From positions 310,001-374,000 of IMG/VR virus record IMGVR_UViG_3300047994_000374: a DNA stretch of 64,000 nt; one strand, 5' to 3'. Position numbers and translations under genes: made by a program. This document shows positions 27,070-30,565 of this stretch, piece by piece. A model generated the notes under the pieces. It saw nothing but the letters and a program-made list of their open reading frames with translations. It made no database searches and was not told the origin of the DNA. Every line of letters starts with the position of its first letter. The stretch's first letter is position 1.

Positions 27070-27777
27070 TTATACATTTAATATGGAGTTCCTTAAATAT
27101 TCGGAAGGCGTACCTAAAACAATGGTTTCTTTTTCACTATAGTTTTTACTAACGGATATCTGTTTATGATTATTAATTAATTTTTTATATATTTCGCTGA
27201 TATAATTTTCATTTTCATAATTGTCCAAGAAAAGTTCGGATGAAGAAAATCCATATAATCCGGACGTTGCCAAATCAGATATTAATACTTTTTCCGAAAT
27301 CTCACTCACCATATTGTTTTTAAGTAAAACATAACTGTAATCATGATTATTAGAGTTGAAAACATCTATATGTCCATCATATTTTTTTAATGTTTCTTTA
27401 ATGGCTTCAACATCACGGTTATAAAGAATTGTATCTATATTATGAAAAATAATAGGTCCATGCAATTTGTGGAATTTTTCGACTTCAGAAATACCTAAAA
27501 AAGCGGATTGAGCTTGTCCATTAGTATCTGGCAGCTGAATTAAATTTTTATCATCAATCTTATAGTAAAGCATTATCTTTTTAAGATGACTAAAAAAATC
27601 ACTATCCGCTTTATTTACAATTAAAAATACATTTTCGATTGATTTTGATTTTAATAATTCATTAAGTATTTCTGATAAAATAGTTCGATTGCCCCAAGGA
27701 AGTAAATATTTTGGTAGCTTATAGCCTTCATTTTTAAATCTGGAATATTTGCCCGCCATCGTTAAAATTAAATTCAT
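27070..27777 (-). CDS. sugar-phosphate nucleotidyltransferase family protein
   Basis: LILTMAGKYSRFKNEGYKLPKYLL, TNGQAQS, HNIDT, LGTPSEY. Confidence 0.85.
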   Translation of the reverse strand: MNLILTMAGKYSRFKNEGYKLPKYLLPWGNRTILSEILNELLKSKSIENVFLIVNKADSDFFSHLKKIMLYYKIDDKNLIQLPDTNGQAQSAFLGISEVEKFHKLHGPIIFHNIDTILYNRDVEAIKETLKKYDGHIDVFNSNNHDYSYVLLKNNMVSEISEKVLISDLATSGLYGFSSSELFLDNYENENYISEIYKKLINNHKQISVSKNYSEKETIVLGTPSEYLRNSILNV

Positions 27778-27778
27778 T

Positions 27779-28453
27779 TTAGTGCCATTCGCAAGTTGGA
27801 AAAATTGTTACGGTCTTTAATACAACATTTGGTGGAAGTTTTGAAATATAATCAATCATATTCACAATATCAGTTGTTTGTAATAATTCTGATGTATTGC
27901 CCGAATAAGGGTTAGTATTATTCCATAAAGGAGTGTTAATTCCACCGGGGCATATGGTGCTTATTTTAATATTTTTTTGAATGAGTTCTTGATTTAGAGA
28001 CTCGGCAAACCCATTGATACCATATTTTGATGAGCTGTAAATGGATTGCTTTTCTATTCCGTGTGTTCCCGAAACCGAACCAATGTTTATAATTCTTCCA
28101 GCACACATTAACTTCATCGTCTCAAATGTACAATAAATAGTTCCCTTCAAGTTGGTATCGATAATATCATCCATTTCTTCAATTGTAAAATCTTGGAATG
28201 ATTTTTGTTTAAAAATGGAAGCATTATTAATCAATAAATCTATTTTTGGTAAAATATCTTTTATTTTACTAAATGATTTCGATACAGATTTATATTTTCT
28301 TATATCCGTTTTAATGTAATAGAAGTTTTTATTTAAAATGTTTGGTTGGGCTCGCGATAAACCAAAAACAATCCAGTCATTGGATAAAAAATGTTCAGCT
28401 GCGCTCCGTCCAACACCGCTTGACACACCAGTTATGACAACTACTTTATTCAT
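27779..28453 (-). CDS. SDR family oxidoreductase
   Basis: TGVSSGVG, LINNA, GS, YSSSK. Confidence 0.92.
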   Translation of the reverse strand: MNKVVVITGVSSGVGRSAAEHFLSNDWIVFGLSRAQPNILNKNFYYIKTDIRKYKSVSKSFSKIKDILPKIDLLINNASIFKQKSFQDFTIEEMDDIIDTNLKGTIYCTFETMKLMCAGRIINIGSVSGTHGIEKQSIYSSSKYGINGFAESLNQELIQKNIKISTICPGGINTPLWNNTNPYSGNTSELLQTTDIVNMIDYISKLPPNVVLKTVTIFPTCEWH

Positions 28454-29585
28454 TTAATTCTTTATTAAATTCTGAAAATAATAAGGCAGCATCAACAATT
28501 TCGTCGTAAGTCAAATCATTAATGAAAACCGCAGTGCCAATTGAAGTTGGCACGGGTAAATTTTGATCTCCATTTCGATGTTTGATGGTATCTTGAAGCG
28601 ATTCGAACAACAATAAATGATCGGCGAAGGATTCATGATAGGTTGGAAGTGCCATGCTTTTCGCTACACGCATTATTTTTAAGACATCTTCTTTTGCAAG
28701 CATATTTCTTTTATAAGAAAGAATACTTGAAAAAATAATATCTAAAGTAACCGCCTGCCCATGAGTTAGCGCTTTTACATTTTTATCAGCTAGCGACCTC
28801 ATCTCTATAATTGGACTAAATGAATGTCCAAAATCAACAATTCGCTTTAAATTTTTCTCCCAAAGATTATTTTCTAATTCTTCTTTCATATCCTGAATTG
28901 CAAAATTAATAACATCATCTGCGTGTTCACAATCAAATTTTGTGTCTAAAAGGATTTTACCATGAGTTTCCAATATATTAAACAATGGTAAGTCTTTAAT
29001 AACTGCCATCTTTAATATCTCGCCTAAACCTGAGCTAATTTCAATTTCTTCTAAAGTTTTCAAAAAAGCTTTGTCTAAATAAGAAGCTAATGGAGGGTAA
29101 TAAGAACCTAATCGATTTCGCCTATCTTCAAAATTAATTCCTGTTTTAGCCGCGACGCTAACATCAATGATGCCCAATAAAGTCGTTGGCACTCGAATAT
29201 ATGGAATCCCTCGCCGATATAATGTAGCAGCAAGTCCAGCTACATCAAGAATTACTCCCCCGCCGATAGCAATAATGGGTTCGCTTTTTCTTGAGGTGCC
29301 AAATTTTTCAATTTCTTCTAAAAGGTAAATTAAACTTGTTAAATTCTTTTCAGTTTCAACACCATTAATAACTACGAGCCTATAAGTTATTTGATGATGA
29401 TCAAAATAATTTTTAATTGTTTTTAAGTATAAATTGCTAACCTTATTATCAATAACTACAACAGCTCTTTTCGTAGAGCAACAATCAAGAATGTCATTAT
29501 TTTTTATATCAAATATTCCTGGCGAATTTTTTACGATATAATTAATAGGTAGAGAAGTATTGATTGTCCAAGTTTTCATTTGCAT
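28446..29585 (-). CDS. sedoheptulose 7-phosphate cyclase (2-epi-5-epi-valiolone synthase-like)
   Basis: GGGVILD, YRRGIPYIRVPTTL, NRLGSYYPP, MKEELENNLWE, RIVDFGHSFSPIIEM, HGQAV. Confidence 0.85.
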   Translation of the reverse strand: MQMKTWTINTSLPINYIVKNSPGIFDIKNNDILDCCSTKRAVVVIDNKVSNLYLKTIKNYFDHHQITYRLVVINGVETEKNLTSLIYLLEEIEKFGTSRKSEPIIAIGGGVILDVAGLAATLYRRGIPYIRVPTTLLGIIDVSVAAKTGINFEDRRNRLGSYYPPLASYLDKAFLKTLEEIEISSGLGEILKMAVIKDLPLFNILETHGKILLDTKFDCEHADDVINFAIQDMKEELENNLWEKNLKRIVDFGHSFSPIIEMRSLADKNVKALTHGQAVTLDIIFSSILSYKRNMLAKEDVLKIMRVAKSMALPTYHESFADHLLLFESLQDTIKHRNGDQNLPVPTSIGTAVFINDLTYDEIVDAALLFSEFNKELNE

Positions 29586-30565
29586 CCATTAGTTTGTAAA
29601 TCGTGAAAAAGCTTCGAGGCGAGAGCGTAAAAGAAAATCATTTTAGTTTCATCAATTGCCATTTTAAAGGGTAACATTCGTATAAATTGTGATATCTCTA
29701 ATAATTTTATAATTTCAAATTGCTTATCATCACAAACTTTTTTAATGTATTTTGTAAACTCTTGATTAAAATAATCTAAGCCTTCGTAAGTTGGCAAATT
29801 TACTTTCACTTCATTTTCAGTTATTTCTACATCAATAGCATTATACAATTCATATTTTGAATTTGAAGACTGATATATTTGAGAATATTCTGCCAAAACA
29901 GAGTCAACAACATTTTCTTCATAAGGATCAATAAAAATAATTTGATCCTTTTCTGCAGAATATAGTGTATTTTCCAGTGTTAAATTTCCGTGAGTAAATG
30001 TTTCTGTAGGATTTACATAATTACTAAATCTTCCATAAAAATCATTTATTTGTGATAAAAATGATGGAATCTTTTCACCGTTAAAATACAAAAAATCATA
30101 TTTAATAAATTTAGAAAATAAATTACTAGTATGACAGTCAGATAGTTTTTTGGAAACCTCTTCAAGCAAATAAAGATCAATGGACTCTGAATTAGATGGA
30201 ATAGAAATGTTATGCATCTTATTCATTGTACTTATTAAAGTTTTTGTAAATTTCTTAATTTGCTTTTTATCAGTAGTAGAAATTAAAAATTCGTGCCCAG
30301 TGATAAAATTTTCAAAATATTCCATATCAAAATAAGCAAAATCATTTTCATGACCATAATTTAATATTTTTGGAAAAACTTTTGGAAATAAAATAGAATA
30401 GCGCTGCATACGCTTTAACTGAGAGTACCATCTTTGAAAGCCGTATTCACGATTCTCAACTAATGAGACTTCTTTGCGGACAAAATAATTTTCACCATCT
30501 TTTATTAAATAAGTGGCGCTTAATGATCCACCTTTTAGGCGTTTTTTTATCATATTCTTACTCAT
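29576..30565 (-). CDS. APH/choline-kinase-like phosphotransferase
   Basis: LKGGSLS, FDMEY, THGNLTLEN, FIDP. Confidence 0.75.
   Translation of the reverse strand: MSKNMIKKRLKGGSLSATYLIKDGENYFVRKEVSLVENREYGFQRWYSQLKRMQRYSILFPKVFPKILNYGHENDFAYFDMEYFENFITGHEFLISTTDKKQIKKFTKTLISTMNKMHNISIPSNSESIDLYLLEEVSKKLSDCHTSNLFSKFIKYDFLYFNGEKIPSFLSQINDFYGRFSNYVNPTETFTHGNLTLENTLYSAEKDQIIFIDPYEENVVDSVLAEYSQIYQSSNSKYELYNAIDVEITENEVKVNLPTYEGLDYFNQEFTKYIKKVCDDKQFEIIKLLEISQFIRMLPFKMAIDETKMIFFYALASKLFHDLQTNGCK

Follow-up and report, generated by a model that had tools for sequence, protein, structure and literature searches.

Among the closest described systems is the NDP-valienol branch of acarbose and validamycin biosynthesis, which comprises the EEVS cyclases AcbC and ValA, the C1 kinase AcbU, the HAD phosphatase AcbJ, the guanylyltransferases AcbR and VldB, and the pseudo-glycosyltransferases AcbS, VldE, and ValL. 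A second group is formed by the salvage-type pairs of an anomeric kinase and a nucleotidyltransferase, such as NahK (N-acetylhexosamine 1-kinase) and AmgK/MurU of Pseudomonas (Gisin et al. 2013), in which a kinase of the protein-kinase/APH fold makes a sugar 1-phosphate that a small PF00483-type nucleotidyltransferase converts to the NDP-sugar. A third is the GDP-D-glycero-alpha-D-manno-heptose pathway (GmhA, HddA, GmhB, HddC), in which a nucleotide sugar for LPS or capsule is derived from sedoheptulose 7-phosphate by a kinase, a HAD phosphatase, and a nucleotidyltransferase. Viruses also encode islands of nucleotide-sugar and glycosyltransferase genes, as in the LPS-type genes of the cyanophages, the fibril glycosylation of the giant viruses, the 38-kb carbohydrate region of CroV, and the virion glycosylation of the mycobacteriophages, in which the virus carries its own precursor synthesis together with GT-A-type transferases. 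In the searches run here, none of these viral systems was found to include a sugar-phosphate cyclase or a carbasugar.

The locus examined here lies in a 64-kb window (the whole stretch of DNA analyzed) of the 394-kb giant phage contig IMG/VR UViG 3300047994_000374, and carries four genes that most likely turn sedoheptulose 7-phosphate into a nucleotide-activated "pseudo-sugar" for glycan decoration. It shares with the acarbose and validamycin branch an EEVS-type cyclase acting on sedoheptulose 7-phosphate, a reductase step, phosphorylation that enables nucleotidylation, a nucleotidyltransferase giving an NDP-cyclitol, and a HAD-family enzyme nearby, but it has no ROK-type C7 kinase (AcbM/ValC), VOC epimerase, aminotransferase, or GT20/GT5-type pseudo-glycosyltransferase. 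Its nucleotidyltransferase is also a short 4evw/RmlA-like enzyme, whereas AcbR and VldB are larger and GlgC-like, and its setting is that of phage glycan islands and bacterial LPS/EPS loci, rather than the secondary-metabolite clusters of actinomycetes. In comparison with the salvage pairs, which act on true sugars, the substrate would be a carbocycle made de novo by the adjacent cyclase and SDR. In comparison with the heptose pathway, a cyclase replaces the SIS isomerase, so the product is carbocyclic, and the kinase is not of the GHMP type. No publication describing the cassette was found, nor any paper linking EEVS to phages, in agreement with the preliminary description, whose author knew of no such pathway in a phage.

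Gene organization and phage context

The preliminary description of four tightly coupled genes for a kinase, an EEVS-type cyclase, an SDR, and a nucleotidyltransferase is confirmed by the analysis of the open reading frames. The four genes (Table 1) are intact, and all end in TAA or TGA. The kinase and cyclase genes overlap by 10 nt, the cyclase and SDR genes overlap by 8 nt, and the SDR and nucleotidyltransferase genes are 1 nt apart. These genes form one end of a 9.3-kb glycan island (27070-36409).

Table 1. Coordinates and assignments of the genes of the glycan island within the 64-kb window.
Position	Strand	Length (aa)	Assignment
27070-27777	-	235	Short sugar-1-phosphate-type nucleotidyltransferase
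27779-28453	-	224	Classical short-chain dehydrogenase/reductase (SDR); putative C1 ketoreductase
28446-29585	-	379	EEVS-type sedoheptulose-7-phosphate cyclase
29576-30565	-	329	Protein-kinase-fold (APH/choline-kinase-like) putative cyclitol kinase
30606-31403	+	265	Divergent DUF7796/phrog_13607 paralogue (GT-A-like putative transferase)
31437-33038	-	533	Fusion of a SAM methyltransferase with DUF7796
33038-33775	-	245	DUF7796 protein, predicted GT-A-fold transferase; candidate user of the activated cyclitol
33788-34240	+	150	phrog_34507 protein with a GDPD-like motif (truncated phosphodiesterase-like); role unknown
34259-35626	+	455	Fusion of a beta-phosphoglucomutase-family HAD domain with a second nucleotidyltransferase
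35621-36409	-	262	GT92/GT2-like GT-A glycosyltransferase

The possibility that the contig is in fact a cellular polysaccharide locus had been raised at the outset as one that would overturn the viral reading, and it was examined here, together with the possibility of mis-assembly or mis-binning of bacterial DNA into a viral contig. The nearest relatives of the cassette include bacterial genomes, the gene order of the window (kinase, EEVS, SDR, nucleotidyltransferase) is the bacterial one, and the GC content of the island (28-31%) is slightly below that of the flanks (33-34%). However, T4-type phage genes flank the island on both sides within the same window, including SbcCD, Thg1, RNA ligase, rIIA, and NAD ligase, and the GC content is far from that of the bacterial donors. 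An independent 38.6-kb contig, the syntenic relative L075, shares the island and the flanking Thg1 and RNA-ligase synteny at 78% cyclase identity, and other phage lineages carry the cassette next to UvsX, DnaB, and a virion protein that is 59% identical to that of cyanophage S-RIM8. The contig is a phage, and a cellular origin of the locus is considered very unlikely.

Enzymes of the cassette

The cyclase matches the Pfam families DHQ_synthase and DHQS_C (9e-31 and 4e-21), but falls below the aroB equivalog cut-off (209 against 305 bits). Its best solved relative is ValA (4p53, 1e-86), followed by DDGS (2e-53), DHQS (1e-37 or weaker), and DOIS (1.5e-24), with a margin of about 110 bits over DDGS and 160 bits over DHQS. 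Both of the motifs on which the preliminary description had based its assignment, MKEELENNLWE and VDFGHSFSPIIEM, are present in the translation. In the alignment, VDFGHSFSP is found in both the phage cyclase and ValA, where DDGS (5tpr) has IAYGHTWSP and DHQS has LNYGHTFGH, and the metal-ligand and VDFGHSFSP positions are shared with ValA and are invariant in 23 homologues. In a phylogenetic tree, the cyclase lies in a mixed bacterial and viral cassette clade, apart from the actinomycete, natural-product-type EEVS. Confirmed EVS enzymes group with DHQS rather than with EEVS (PMC5133447). The claim that the cyclase is EEVS-type, and not AroB or DDGS, is thus supported.

The SDR matches adh_short at 2e-45 and has a complete catalytic set, with the TGxxxGxG, NNAS, S...YxxxK, and PG motifs readable in the translation, while the Arg after strand beta-2 (GLSR) suggests the use of NADP(H).

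Neither the kinase nor the short nucleotidyltransferase reaches a curated Pfam or NCBIfam threshold. In the kinase, the only Pfam-level similarity is to choline/ethanolamine kinase (Choline_kinase, 1e-4, below the cut-off), although its AF2 model has a pLDDT of 94, and the best Foldseek matches are the anomeric sugar kinases NahK (4ocj, 3.6e-8) and MTR kinase, together with the aminoglycoside/aminocyclitol kinases APH(2'')/(3')/(9). This supports the earlier claim of an APH/protein-kinase fold, unlike the ROK kinases ValC and AcbM. The catalytic loop reads HGNLTLEN, and all the cassette kinases have Asn in place of the catalytic Asp (HGNxTLEN in 80 of 81 loci), which is unexplained. The NahK-type and AmgK-type kinases and the nearest outgroup all keep HGD. 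The only PDB sequence match of the family profile is the JAK2 JH2 pseudokinase loop. Kinase activity is therefore not assured, and the protein may be a pseudokinase-like subunit or an enzyme with different chemistry, in which case the nucleotidyltransferase would activate some other sugar phosphate, or the phosphate would come by another route, such as the cyclization of a bisphosphate followed by the HAD mutase/phosphatase. The replacement of the short nucleotidyltransferase by a HAD-nucleotidyltransferase fusion in some loci is compatible with this alternative, but it is considered unlikely. The ATP/Mg-binding positions (the Gly-rich loop, K31, E40, N199, and D213) are all invariant across phages and bacteria, which argues for catalysis (the full set of invariant residues is G12-G13-S14, K31, E40, N194, E198, N199, and D213), and the EEVS mechanism, being of the established DHQS type, removes the phosphate of the substrate, so a new phosphate is needed for any nucleotidylation.

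The short nucleotidyltransferase scores just below the NTP_transferase cut-off (21.1 against 21.2 bits) and matches phrog_3980 at 3e-29. A search of the PDB with the family profile recovered the NDP-sugar pyrophosphorylase 4evw (1.3e-39), RmlA (4e-9), TarI (3e-6), and an HddC-like structure (2e-4). Weak hits to IspD and ribitol-5-phosphate cytidylyltransferase, together with the choline-kinase similarity of the kinase, leave open the doubtful alternative of a CDP-alcohol-type donor, in which the cyclitol phosphate would be activated as CDP-cyclitol and transferred as phospho-cyclitol to give a phosphodiester-linked decoration, by analogy with CDP-choline (LicA/LicC), CDP-ribitol (TarJ/TarI), or CDP-glycerol. 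Phosphoryl transfer would avoid the chemically hard displacement at a saturated carbocyclic carbon (an inference), and the GDPD-like open reading frame of the island may also be relevant here. On the other hand, the profile matches hexose-1-phosphate nucleotidyltransferases much better than TarI or IspD, the best matches of the kinase model are anomeric sugar kinases, no LicD-, TagF-, or Stealth-type phosphotransferase was detected, and the adjacent transferases are GT-A-like.

Distribution of the cassette and the proposed pathway

A survey of phage genomes for the cassette, one of the checks suggested beforehand, showed that it is not a peculiarity of this phage, given that about 70 IMG/VR contigs carry it, as do bacterial LPS/EPS loci. 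In 49 of the 49 IMG/VR loci with at least 2.5 kb on both sides, the kinase and the SDR adjoin the cyclase on the same strand, a linkage far beyond chance, and 44 of these loci also have the short nucleotidyltransferase. In bacteria, all the EEVS genes at 55% identity or more keep the cassette, whereas the actinomycete-type EEVS genes lack it. The bacterial context is LPS/O-antigen-like in Polynucleobacter (ManC, GT2, Wzz, GT9, DegT) and EPS-like in Kofleriaceae (GT4, GT2, pyruvyl transferase, Wzx-type), while in other phages the cassette sits with glycosyltransferases, epimerases, a DegT aminotransferase, and methyltransferases. The cassette is a mobile glycan-locus module, rather than a transplanted acarbose or validamycin pathway.

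The best explanation, held with moderate confidence, is that the four genes form a self-contained module that makes a nucleotide-activated C7 cyclitol (a carba-hexose). In this view, the cyclase converts the pentose-phosphate intermediate sedoheptulose 7-phosphate to 2-epi-5-epi-valiolone and releases phosphate, the NADPH-type SDR reduces the C1 ketone to the pseudo-anomeric hydroxyl (a dehydrated, valienol-type intermediate is not excluded), the kinase-fold enzyme phosphorylates that hydroxyl, and the short nucleotidyltransferase condenses the cyclitol 1-phosphate with an NTP to give the NDP-cyclitol. This logic has a biochemical precedent in AcbU, AcbJ, and AcbR, in which a cyclitol C1 kinase is followed by a guanylyltransferase (PMC9200736). 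The integrity of the genes, their family and fold assignments, the EEVS-type identity of the cyclase, the phage context, and the linkage conserved in phages and in bacterial polysaccharide loci are shown, whereas the order of the steps, the hydroxyl that is phosphorylated, the nucleotide, the transferase, and the acceptor are inferred, with no direct data on the product (including its stereochemistry), the nucleotide, or the acceptor.

The interpretation offered in the preliminary description, that the phage makes a nucleotide-activated carbasugar to decorate virion proteins, DNA, or the host surface, is thus supported only in part, and both the choice among these acceptors and the proposed resistance to glycosidases are pure inference. 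An unlikely alternative is that the module makes a soluble small molecule, such as a free or phosphorylated cyclitol or an NDP-cyclitol acting as a glycosidase inhibitor, signal, osmolyte, or sunscreen precursor that manipulates the host or competitors. All the characterized EEVS pathways give secondary metabolites, such as validamycin, acarbose, gadusol, and kirkamide (PMC12904256, PMC4426668), and cyclitols have been proposed as signals (PMC12904256). However, no MT-Ox, aminotransferase/pseudo-glycosyltransferase set, or VOC epimerase accompanies the cyclase, the cassette always includes a nucleotidyltransferase, and it sits among glycosyltransferases, Wzz/Wzx-type genes, and sugar-nucleotide enzymes in both bacteria and phages, in addition to forming the separate clade described above.

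Candidate transferases and other genes of the island

The module would be the precursor-supply part of the island, in which the three DUF7796 proteins, the GT92-like transferase, and the HAD-nucleotidyltransferase fusion would place the cyclitol, and probably other sugars, on a glycoconjugate made in the cytoplasm of the infected cell, with a virion protein or a host envelope glycan as possible acceptors. The GT-A-like transferases probably use the activated cyclitol. No homologue of the VldE/AcbS-type pseudo-glycosyltransferases was seen, and the transfer of a saturated cyclitol from an NDP donor has no precedent, because the known enzymes use allylic GDP-valienol.

The AF2 model of the 245-aa DUF7796 protein (pLDDT 84, pTM 0.87) matches the GT6 ABO transferases, BoGT6a, and COLGALT1 in the PDB by Foldseek, with E about 5e-7 and TM about 0.5, and R134, D136, and D169 are invariant. 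A DUF7796 gene lies within 8 kb of the cyclase in 37 of the 49 viral loci. Relatives occur in the Synechococcus phages S-SKS1 and S-PRM1, in CroV, and in other giant viruses. The family is not cyclitol-specific, however: it also occurs in cyanophages and giant viruses that lack the cyclase, and it is absent near the bacterial cassettes. Its link to the cyclitol rests on adjacency only. The divergent paralogue matches phrog_13607 at 7e-9, aligns within the alignment A2, and was recovered (as P0125) by the A2 profile. The fusion protein matches Methyltransf_25/11/23 and DUF7796 (8.6e-13), and the same fusion is present in L075. The GT92-like protein matches Glyco_transf_92 at 7e-19 and Glyco_tranf_2_4 at 2e-14, and its homologue in L075 is annotated as PF01697.

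The HAD-nucleotidyltransferase fusion matches HAD_2 (5e-26), NTP_transferase (4e-9), and the PGMB family TIGR02009 (2e-21), and a fusion of this type stands in for the short nucleotidyltransferase in the loci L058-L062 and in the Saccharibacteria loci L090/L091. The phrog_34507 protein (8e-34) has no Pfam match, but contains an AHRG...PE.N...EIDVW motif, and it co-occurs with the HAD-nucleotidyltransferase fusion in the loci L004, L058-62, L072, L075, L077/78, and L087.

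The four-gene cassette and the assignment of its products

The four genes identified in the preliminary description are present exactly as it described them, as ORFs that lie on the minus strand, and that observation is confirmed. The junctions between them, in the order kinase, cyclase, SDR and nucleotidyltransferase, are a 10-nt overlap, an 8-nt overlap and a 1-nt gap, and both of the peptide motifs originally read in the cyclase are found in its translation. All four genes end in TAA or TGA. This is relevant to the presence, elsewhere in the window, of a tRNA with the anticodon CUA (an amber suppressor, labeled tRNA-Pyl by ARAGORN), just downstream of a Thg1-like gene, which raised the question of TAG recoding. 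However, TAG is rare as a stop, ending only 3 of the 93 long reading frames in the window, and no same-frame gene pair is split by TAG, so the four genes are not affected. A scan for promoters and terminators was uninformative, with 84 promoter-like sites against 63 ± 11 expected, and 6 terminator-like sites against 5.5 expected.

Coordinates of the cassette, the surrounding glycan island and other features of the window
Position	Strand	Feature	Length
2.5-5.9 kb		SbcC/SbcD-like (gp46/47-type) genes
23.7-25.5 kb		Stretch with the Thg1-like gene and the tRNA
23703-23777	-	tRNA with anticodon CUA
24709-25461		Thg1-like tRNA-His guanylyltransferase gene
27070-36409		Glycan island, with the cassette at its left end	9.3 kb
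27070-27777	-	Putative short nucleotidyltransferase	235 aa
27779-28453	-	SDR	224 aa
28446-29585	-	EEVS-type cyclase	379 aa
29576-30565	-	Kinase-like protein (HGN loop at residues 192-199)	329 aa
30606-31403; 31437-33038; 33038-33775	+; -; -	Three DUF7796 / phrog_13607 paralogues, one fused to a SAM methyltransferase
33788-34240	+	GDPD-motif protein (phrog_34507)	150 aa
34259-35626	+	Beta-phosphoglucomutase-family HAD domain fused to a second nucleotidyltransferase
37676-38257	-	Matrixin-like (M10) zinc metallopeptidase
39083-39526	-	HSP20 / alpha-crystallin small heat-shock protein
39.6 kb		RNA ligase
47.6 kb		rIIA
50001-54000		Local rise in GC	
51164-52894		HNH-endonuclease-family ORF	576 aa
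52926-54077		ATPase
56.8 kb		NAD-dependent ligase

The cyclase has the two-domain DHQS fold, with Pfam matches to DHQ_synthase (PF01761, 9e-31) and DHQS_C (PF24621, 4e-21), and the NAD-binding loop GGGVILD at residues 108-114, which is invariant in an alignment of 23 homologues. In NCBIfam, it falls well below the aroB equivalog cut-off (209 against 305 bits). When compared with all PDB sequences, the best match is ValA, the EEVS of validamycin biosynthesis (4p53, 1e-86, 294 bits), followed by DDGS (5tpr, 2e-53, 185 bits), the DHQS enzymes (1e-37 or weaker, 130 bits at best) and DOIS (1.5e-24, 90 bits). The query and ValA share the AKTGxNF...NRLG phosphate-binding stretch, the GEILK glutamate, VDFGHSFSP and HG(Q/E)AV, whereas DDGS has AYGHTWSP and DHQS has NYGHTFGH at the site that corresponds to VDFGHSFSP. 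The metal ligands E189, H254 and H275, together with D251, the EEVS-specific Asp before GH, align with the residues of ValA and are invariant in the 23 homologues. Confirmed EVS enzymes cluster with DHQS rather than with EEVS (PMC5133447), although no EVS sequence was compared directly. On this basis the protein is accepted as an EEVS-type sedoheptulose-7-phosphate cyclase, with the caveat that the full 14-site EEVS fingerprint of Kean et al. 2014 was not examined and the conversion of sedoheptulose 7-phosphate to 2-epi-5-epi-valiolone was not assayed, so that the sequence-based check rests on the alignments with ValA, DDGS and DHQS. The phylogeny proposed at the outset was built from 100 fetched homologues rooted on Salmonella AroB, and did not include named ValA, AcbC, DDGS and EVS references. 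In this tree, the cyclase of the window and that of L075, an independent 38.6-kb contig (support 96), lie in a 17-member mixed bacterial and viral clade (support 99), while a separate 46-member clade is purely viral (support 99), and the cyclases of the natural-product type lie outside both.

The SDR matches adh_short (2e-45) and has the TGxxxGxG, NNAS, Ser...YxxxK and PG motifs, as well as an Arg after strand beta-2 (GLSR), features that are typical of NADPH-dependent classical ketoreductases. The nucleotidyltransferase scores 21.1 bits for NTP_transferase (PF00483), just under the cut-off of 21.2. With regard to the N-terminal G-x-G-x-R...PK signature of the sugar-1-phosphate nucleotidyltransferases, MAGKYSRF...PK is present, and G9, R13 and K23 are invariant. 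The family profile matches an NDP-sugar pyrophosphorylase of unknown specificity (4evw, 1.3e-39), then RmlA-type glucose-1-phosphate thymidylyltransferases (4e-9), other hexose-1-phosphate transferases and an HddC-like protein, with the ribitol-5-phosphate and MEP cytidylyltransferases matching more weakly. These observations, in the absence of an identified substrate or NTP, point toward the RmlA-like group without settling membership of it.

The kinase-like protein has no PDB relative detectable by single-sequence search, which made structure prediction necessary. Its score for Choline_kinase is 22 bits against a cut-off of 29, so it does not reach the Pfam gathering score for PF01633 or PF01636, and only 8 (Choline_kinase) and 6 (APH) of 35 family members match at E of 0.01 or better. 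The AF2 model is nevertheless confident (pLDDT 94), and its best Foldseek matches are N-acetylhexosamine 1-kinase NahK, 5-methylthioribose kinase and the APH(2''), APH(3') and APH(9) enzymes, with E values from 4e-8 to 2e-6. These are anomeric sugar kinases and aminoglycoside or aminocyclitol kinases, and the "APH-fold" assignment made initially is therefore right. The residues expected of the bilobal kinase fold for ATP and Mg binding, that is, the Gly-rich loop (G12-G13-S14), the beta-3 Lys K31, the alpha-C Glu E40, N199 and D213, are all invariant.

The catalytic Asp of the HxDxxxxN (Brenner) motif is, however, replaced by Asn, given that the loop reads H192-G-N194-L-T-L-E198-N199, followed by I-D213-P-Y-E-E. 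This Asn is found in all 35 aligned family members, in 80 of 81 kinases from the fetched loci, and in all the cassette-type representatives that cover the loop in a search of 1.84 billion proteins. The next most similar family (110-130 bits) keeps HGD, and its members are fused to LPG_synthase_TM or to nucleotidyltransferase plus HAD domains. The only PDB sequence match of the family profile is the HGN loop of the JAK2 JH2 pseudokinase domain (E 0.01). This is a lineage-specific change from Asp to Asn under strong conservation, which is compatible with an active kinase that uses another base, E198 being the obvious candidate, but it is unexplained and represents the main weakness of the pathway model. 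A non-kinase role for the HGN protein is still possible. A 728-aa metagenomic representative, P0253, in which kinase and EEVS appear in one ORF, looked like a Rosetta-stone fusion, but its 68-residue Arg/Pro/Gly-rich linker replaces the conserved C-terminus of the kinase and looks like a frameshift or gene-calling artefact, and it is not counted as evidence.

Phage context, distribution and genomic setting

One condition identified in advance as fatal to the interpretation was that the contig might prove to be a cellular polysaccharide locus. The contig is that of a phage. The window carries SbcC/SbcD-like genes, a Thg1-like gene, a tRNA, an RNA ligase, rIIA and an NAD-dependent ligase, and nearly all the genes are on one strand. 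The source, IMG/VR UViG 3300047994_000374, has 394,192 bp, and its rIIA is closest to the jumbo Xanthomonas phage XacN1 and to an uncultured 462-kb phage. The contig L075, with a cyclase 78% identical, shares the island and the flanking Thg1 and RNA-ligase genes. Cellular contamination is effectively excluded by this synteny and the flanking phage genes, although reads were not mapped across the borders of the island.

A survey of phage genomes for the cassette, another of the checks suggested beforehand, was made in two ways. A search of IMG/VR with a cyclase alignment returned 74 loci, and the proteins of the window were searched against the six-frame ORFs of these loci. In all of the 49 viral loci with at least 2.5 kb on both sides, the kinase and the SDR adjoin the cyclase on the same strand. 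In 44, the short nucleotidyltransferase is also present, while the remaining five have the HAD-nucleotidyltransferase type within a few kb, and 37 have a DUF7796 gene within 8 kb. The commonest order is DUF7796, nucleotidyltransferase, kinase, cyclase, SDR. Two of these loci were checked and are true phages, with a UvsX-like recombinase, a DnaB-like helicase and DUF6267, and, in one of them, a virion protein 59% identical to that of Synechococcus phage S-RIM8. They are relatives of T4-like cyanophages, unrelated to the jumbo phage of the window. By contrast, a tblastn search of the cyclase against 50,697 GenBank phage records recovered only bacterial aroB contaminants at 25-30% identity, and a megablast search of the island recovered nothing. 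No isolated phage in GenBank has the cyclase, and, with respect to phages, the cassette is therefore known only from metagenomic contigs.

In the GTDB genomes, every cyclase at 55% identity or more keeps the order kinase, cyclase, SDR, nucleotidyltransferase, and these come from Polynucleobacter, Desulfobulbaceae, several Myxococcota, Balneolaceae and Fibrobacteria. Two Saccharibacteria loci, at 47-50% identity, keep it only in part, and the cyclases of Streptomyces, Kitasatospora, Xenorhabdus and similar organisms, at 35-47% identity, lack it. In Polynucleobacter, of which a cultured strain, Polynucleobacter sp. 80A-SIGWE, carries the cassette, it sits between ManC, GT2 and Wzz on one side, and GT9, an RmlD-like epimerase, a dTDP-sugar isomerase and DegT on the other. 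In a Kofleriaceae MAG, it sits beside GT4, GT2, a polysaccharide pyruvyl transferase and a Wzx-type flippase. In phage-like contigs, it is embedded among GT2, GT7, GT10 and GT11 enzymes, epimerases, sugar C- and O-methyltransferases and a DegT aminotransferase. In L077 and L078 (ENA GROS21 contigs, whose cyclase, P0042, is seen on up to 27 contigs, the longest of 308 kb), a large glycan island, which was not assigned to either a phage or a cell, combines the cassette with GT7, GT10 (fucosyltransferase-like), GT11, WavE, FkbM-type methyltransferases, UDP-glucose dehydrogenase, several epimerases, DUF7796 and the HAD-nucleotidyltransferase fusion, followed by many small ORFs with no family match.

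In the window, the island has a GC content of 28-31%, against 33-34% around it, and includes, in addition to the tabulated genes, a GT92-like enzyme. The family DUF7796 has no literature, and a sequence search of the PDB gave only chance-level hits. Its AF2 model (pLDDT 84) matches GT-A enzymes in Foldseek, such as the ABO GT6 transferases, GT25, BoGT6a and COLGALT1, at E about 5e-7, but with TM of only 0.45-0.53, and while R134-x-D136 and D169 are invariant, there is no canonical DxD and there are no activity data, so that the evidence is divided on whether this is a GT-A glycosyltransferase. Close structural relatives are uncharacterised proteins of the Synechococcus phages S-SKS1 and S-PRM1, of CroV (Cafeteria roenbergensis virus) and of other giant viruses. 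DUF7796 thus appears to be a virus-enriched, GT-A-like family, which is not dedicated to the cyclitol and is absent next to the bacterial cassettes. The 150-aa phrog_34507 protein carries a glycerophosphodiester-phosphodiesterase-like AHRG...PE.N...EIDVW motif, but is only about half the length of a GDPD barrel, and repeatedly co-occurs with the HAD-nucleotidyltransferase fusion in other loci. In some phage and Saccharibacteria loci (L058-L062, L090 and L091), this fusion is the only nucleotidyltransferase near kinase and cyclase, which suggests an alternative mutase/phosphatase route to the activated cyclitol.

Proposed pathway and alternative readings

The chemistry of the EEVS leaves a ketone at C1, next to the ring CH2 that takes the place of the pyranose ring oxygen, and C1 is thus the pseudo-anomeric carbon. 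The shortest coherent route for four enzymes would be the cyclisation of sedoheptulose 7-phosphate, the reduction of C1 by the SDR with NADPH, the phosphorylation of the C1 hydroxyl by the anomeric-kinase-like protein, and nucleotidylation by the hexose-1-phosphate-type transferase, and the product would be an NDP-carba-hexose of the valiolol type. The acarbose pathway gives a direct biochemical precedent for the last steps, in which AcbU phosphorylates the C1 hydroxyl of valienol 7-phosphate, the HAD enzyme AcbJ removes the 7-phosphate, and AcbR makes GDP-valienol (PMC9200736). A pseudo-glycosyltransferase has also been reported to form C-O bonds (PMC12041759). The analysis itself shows the families, the folds, the linkage and the glycan-locus context, with the assignments of the nucleotidyltransferase and DUF7796 less firm than the others, whereas the order of the steps, the regiochemistry, the NTP, the transferase and the acceptor have only been inferred. 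The interpretation advanced in the preliminary description, that the phage makes a nucleotide-activated carbasugar to decorate virion proteins, DNA or the host surface, is supported in part.

The cassette does not belong to a C7N-aminocyclitol natural-product cluster of the acarbose or validamycin type, given that Pfam, NCBIfam and PHROG scans of every ORF from 24162 to 39526 found no ROK-type cyclitol 7-kinase, VOC epimerase, aminotransferase or GT20/GT5-like pseudo-glycosyltransferase, and the kinase has the protein-kinase fold in its model. A soluble cyclitol metabolite is also disfavoured by the obligatory nucleotidyltransferase and the glycan-locus context. A CDP-alcohol logic, in which phospho-cyclitol is transferred, would be chemically easier, and is hinted at by the choline-kinase and IspD/TarI similarities and the GDPD-like ORF, but it is disfavoured by the stronger similarities to hexose-1-phosphate transferases and anomeric kinases, and by the GT-A-like transferases. 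The island proteins lack an obvious lipid-carrier-initiating transferase or flippase among the Pfam hits, a pattern which, although weak negative evidence, favours cytoplasmic glycosylation, for example of virion proteins, or the modification of host glycan precursors. The glycosylation of DNA is not favoured, but is not excluded, since the transferases are GT-A-like and come with multi-sugar machinery (epimerases, aminotransferase and methyltransferases), and the cyanophage-like carriers are not known to hydroxymethylate bases. The whole 394-kb contig was not surveyed for base-hydroxymethylation genes.

The C7 cyclitols are known only as secondary metabolites, such as validamycin, acarbose, gadusol/MAA relatives and kirkamide. 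No relevant publication was found in full-text searches that links EEVS or sedoheptulose-7-phosphate cyclase with phages or viruses, cyclitols with the O-antigen, or carbasugars with polysaccharides and bacteriophages, and a 2026 review of cyclitols does not mention viruses, and notes numerous cryptic clusters. The chemistry of the EEVS, cyclitol kinase and nucleotidyltransferase is already known, whereas the enzyme set (an Asp-less kinase-fold enzyme, a compact nucleotidyltransferase and no known pseudo-glycosyltransferase), the setting in structural glycan loci and phage islands, and the breadth, with about 70 viral contigs from at least two unrelated phage lineages (a 394-kb jumbo phage and many relatives of T4-like cyanophages), are new. 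The cassette ties EEVS chemistry to nucleotide activation inside the glycan-biosynthesis loci of diverse bacteria.

It is possible, although only as a tentative reading, that a C7 carbasugar made by this cassette is built into primary glycoconjugates, that is, phage virion glycoproteins or host envelope glycans in infected cells, and LPS or EPS in the bacteria that carry the cassette. This would be the first carbocyclic pseudo-hexose found in structural glycans rather than in secondary metabolites, installed by a new class of GT-A-type pseudo-glycosyl (or phospho-cyclitol) transferases, and phosphorylated by a kinase lineage that works without the canonical catalytic Asp. Because the cassette is common in freshwater relatives of T4-like cyanophages, it would be an ecologically widespread, glycosidase-resistant surface modification bearing on phage-host recognition. 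If the product is incorporated into glycans, a new monosaccharide-like building block would be added to bacterial and viral glycobiology, and a function would be given to a large set of "3-dehydroquinate synthase" genes annotated in viromes. New enzymes would also become available for making NDP-carbasugars, including the Asp-less kinase, the compact nucleotidyltransferase and candidate pseudo-glycosyltransferases. All four enzymes of the cassette are small and predicted to be soluble, and the hypothesis is directly testable.

Other features of the window

The phage also encodes a matrixin-like zinc metallopeptidase and a small heat-shock protein, just beyond the glycan island. Further along the window, the GC content rises locally to 39-42%, against about 33% elsewhere, and this rise coincides with the HNH-endonuclease-family ORF and the ATPase.
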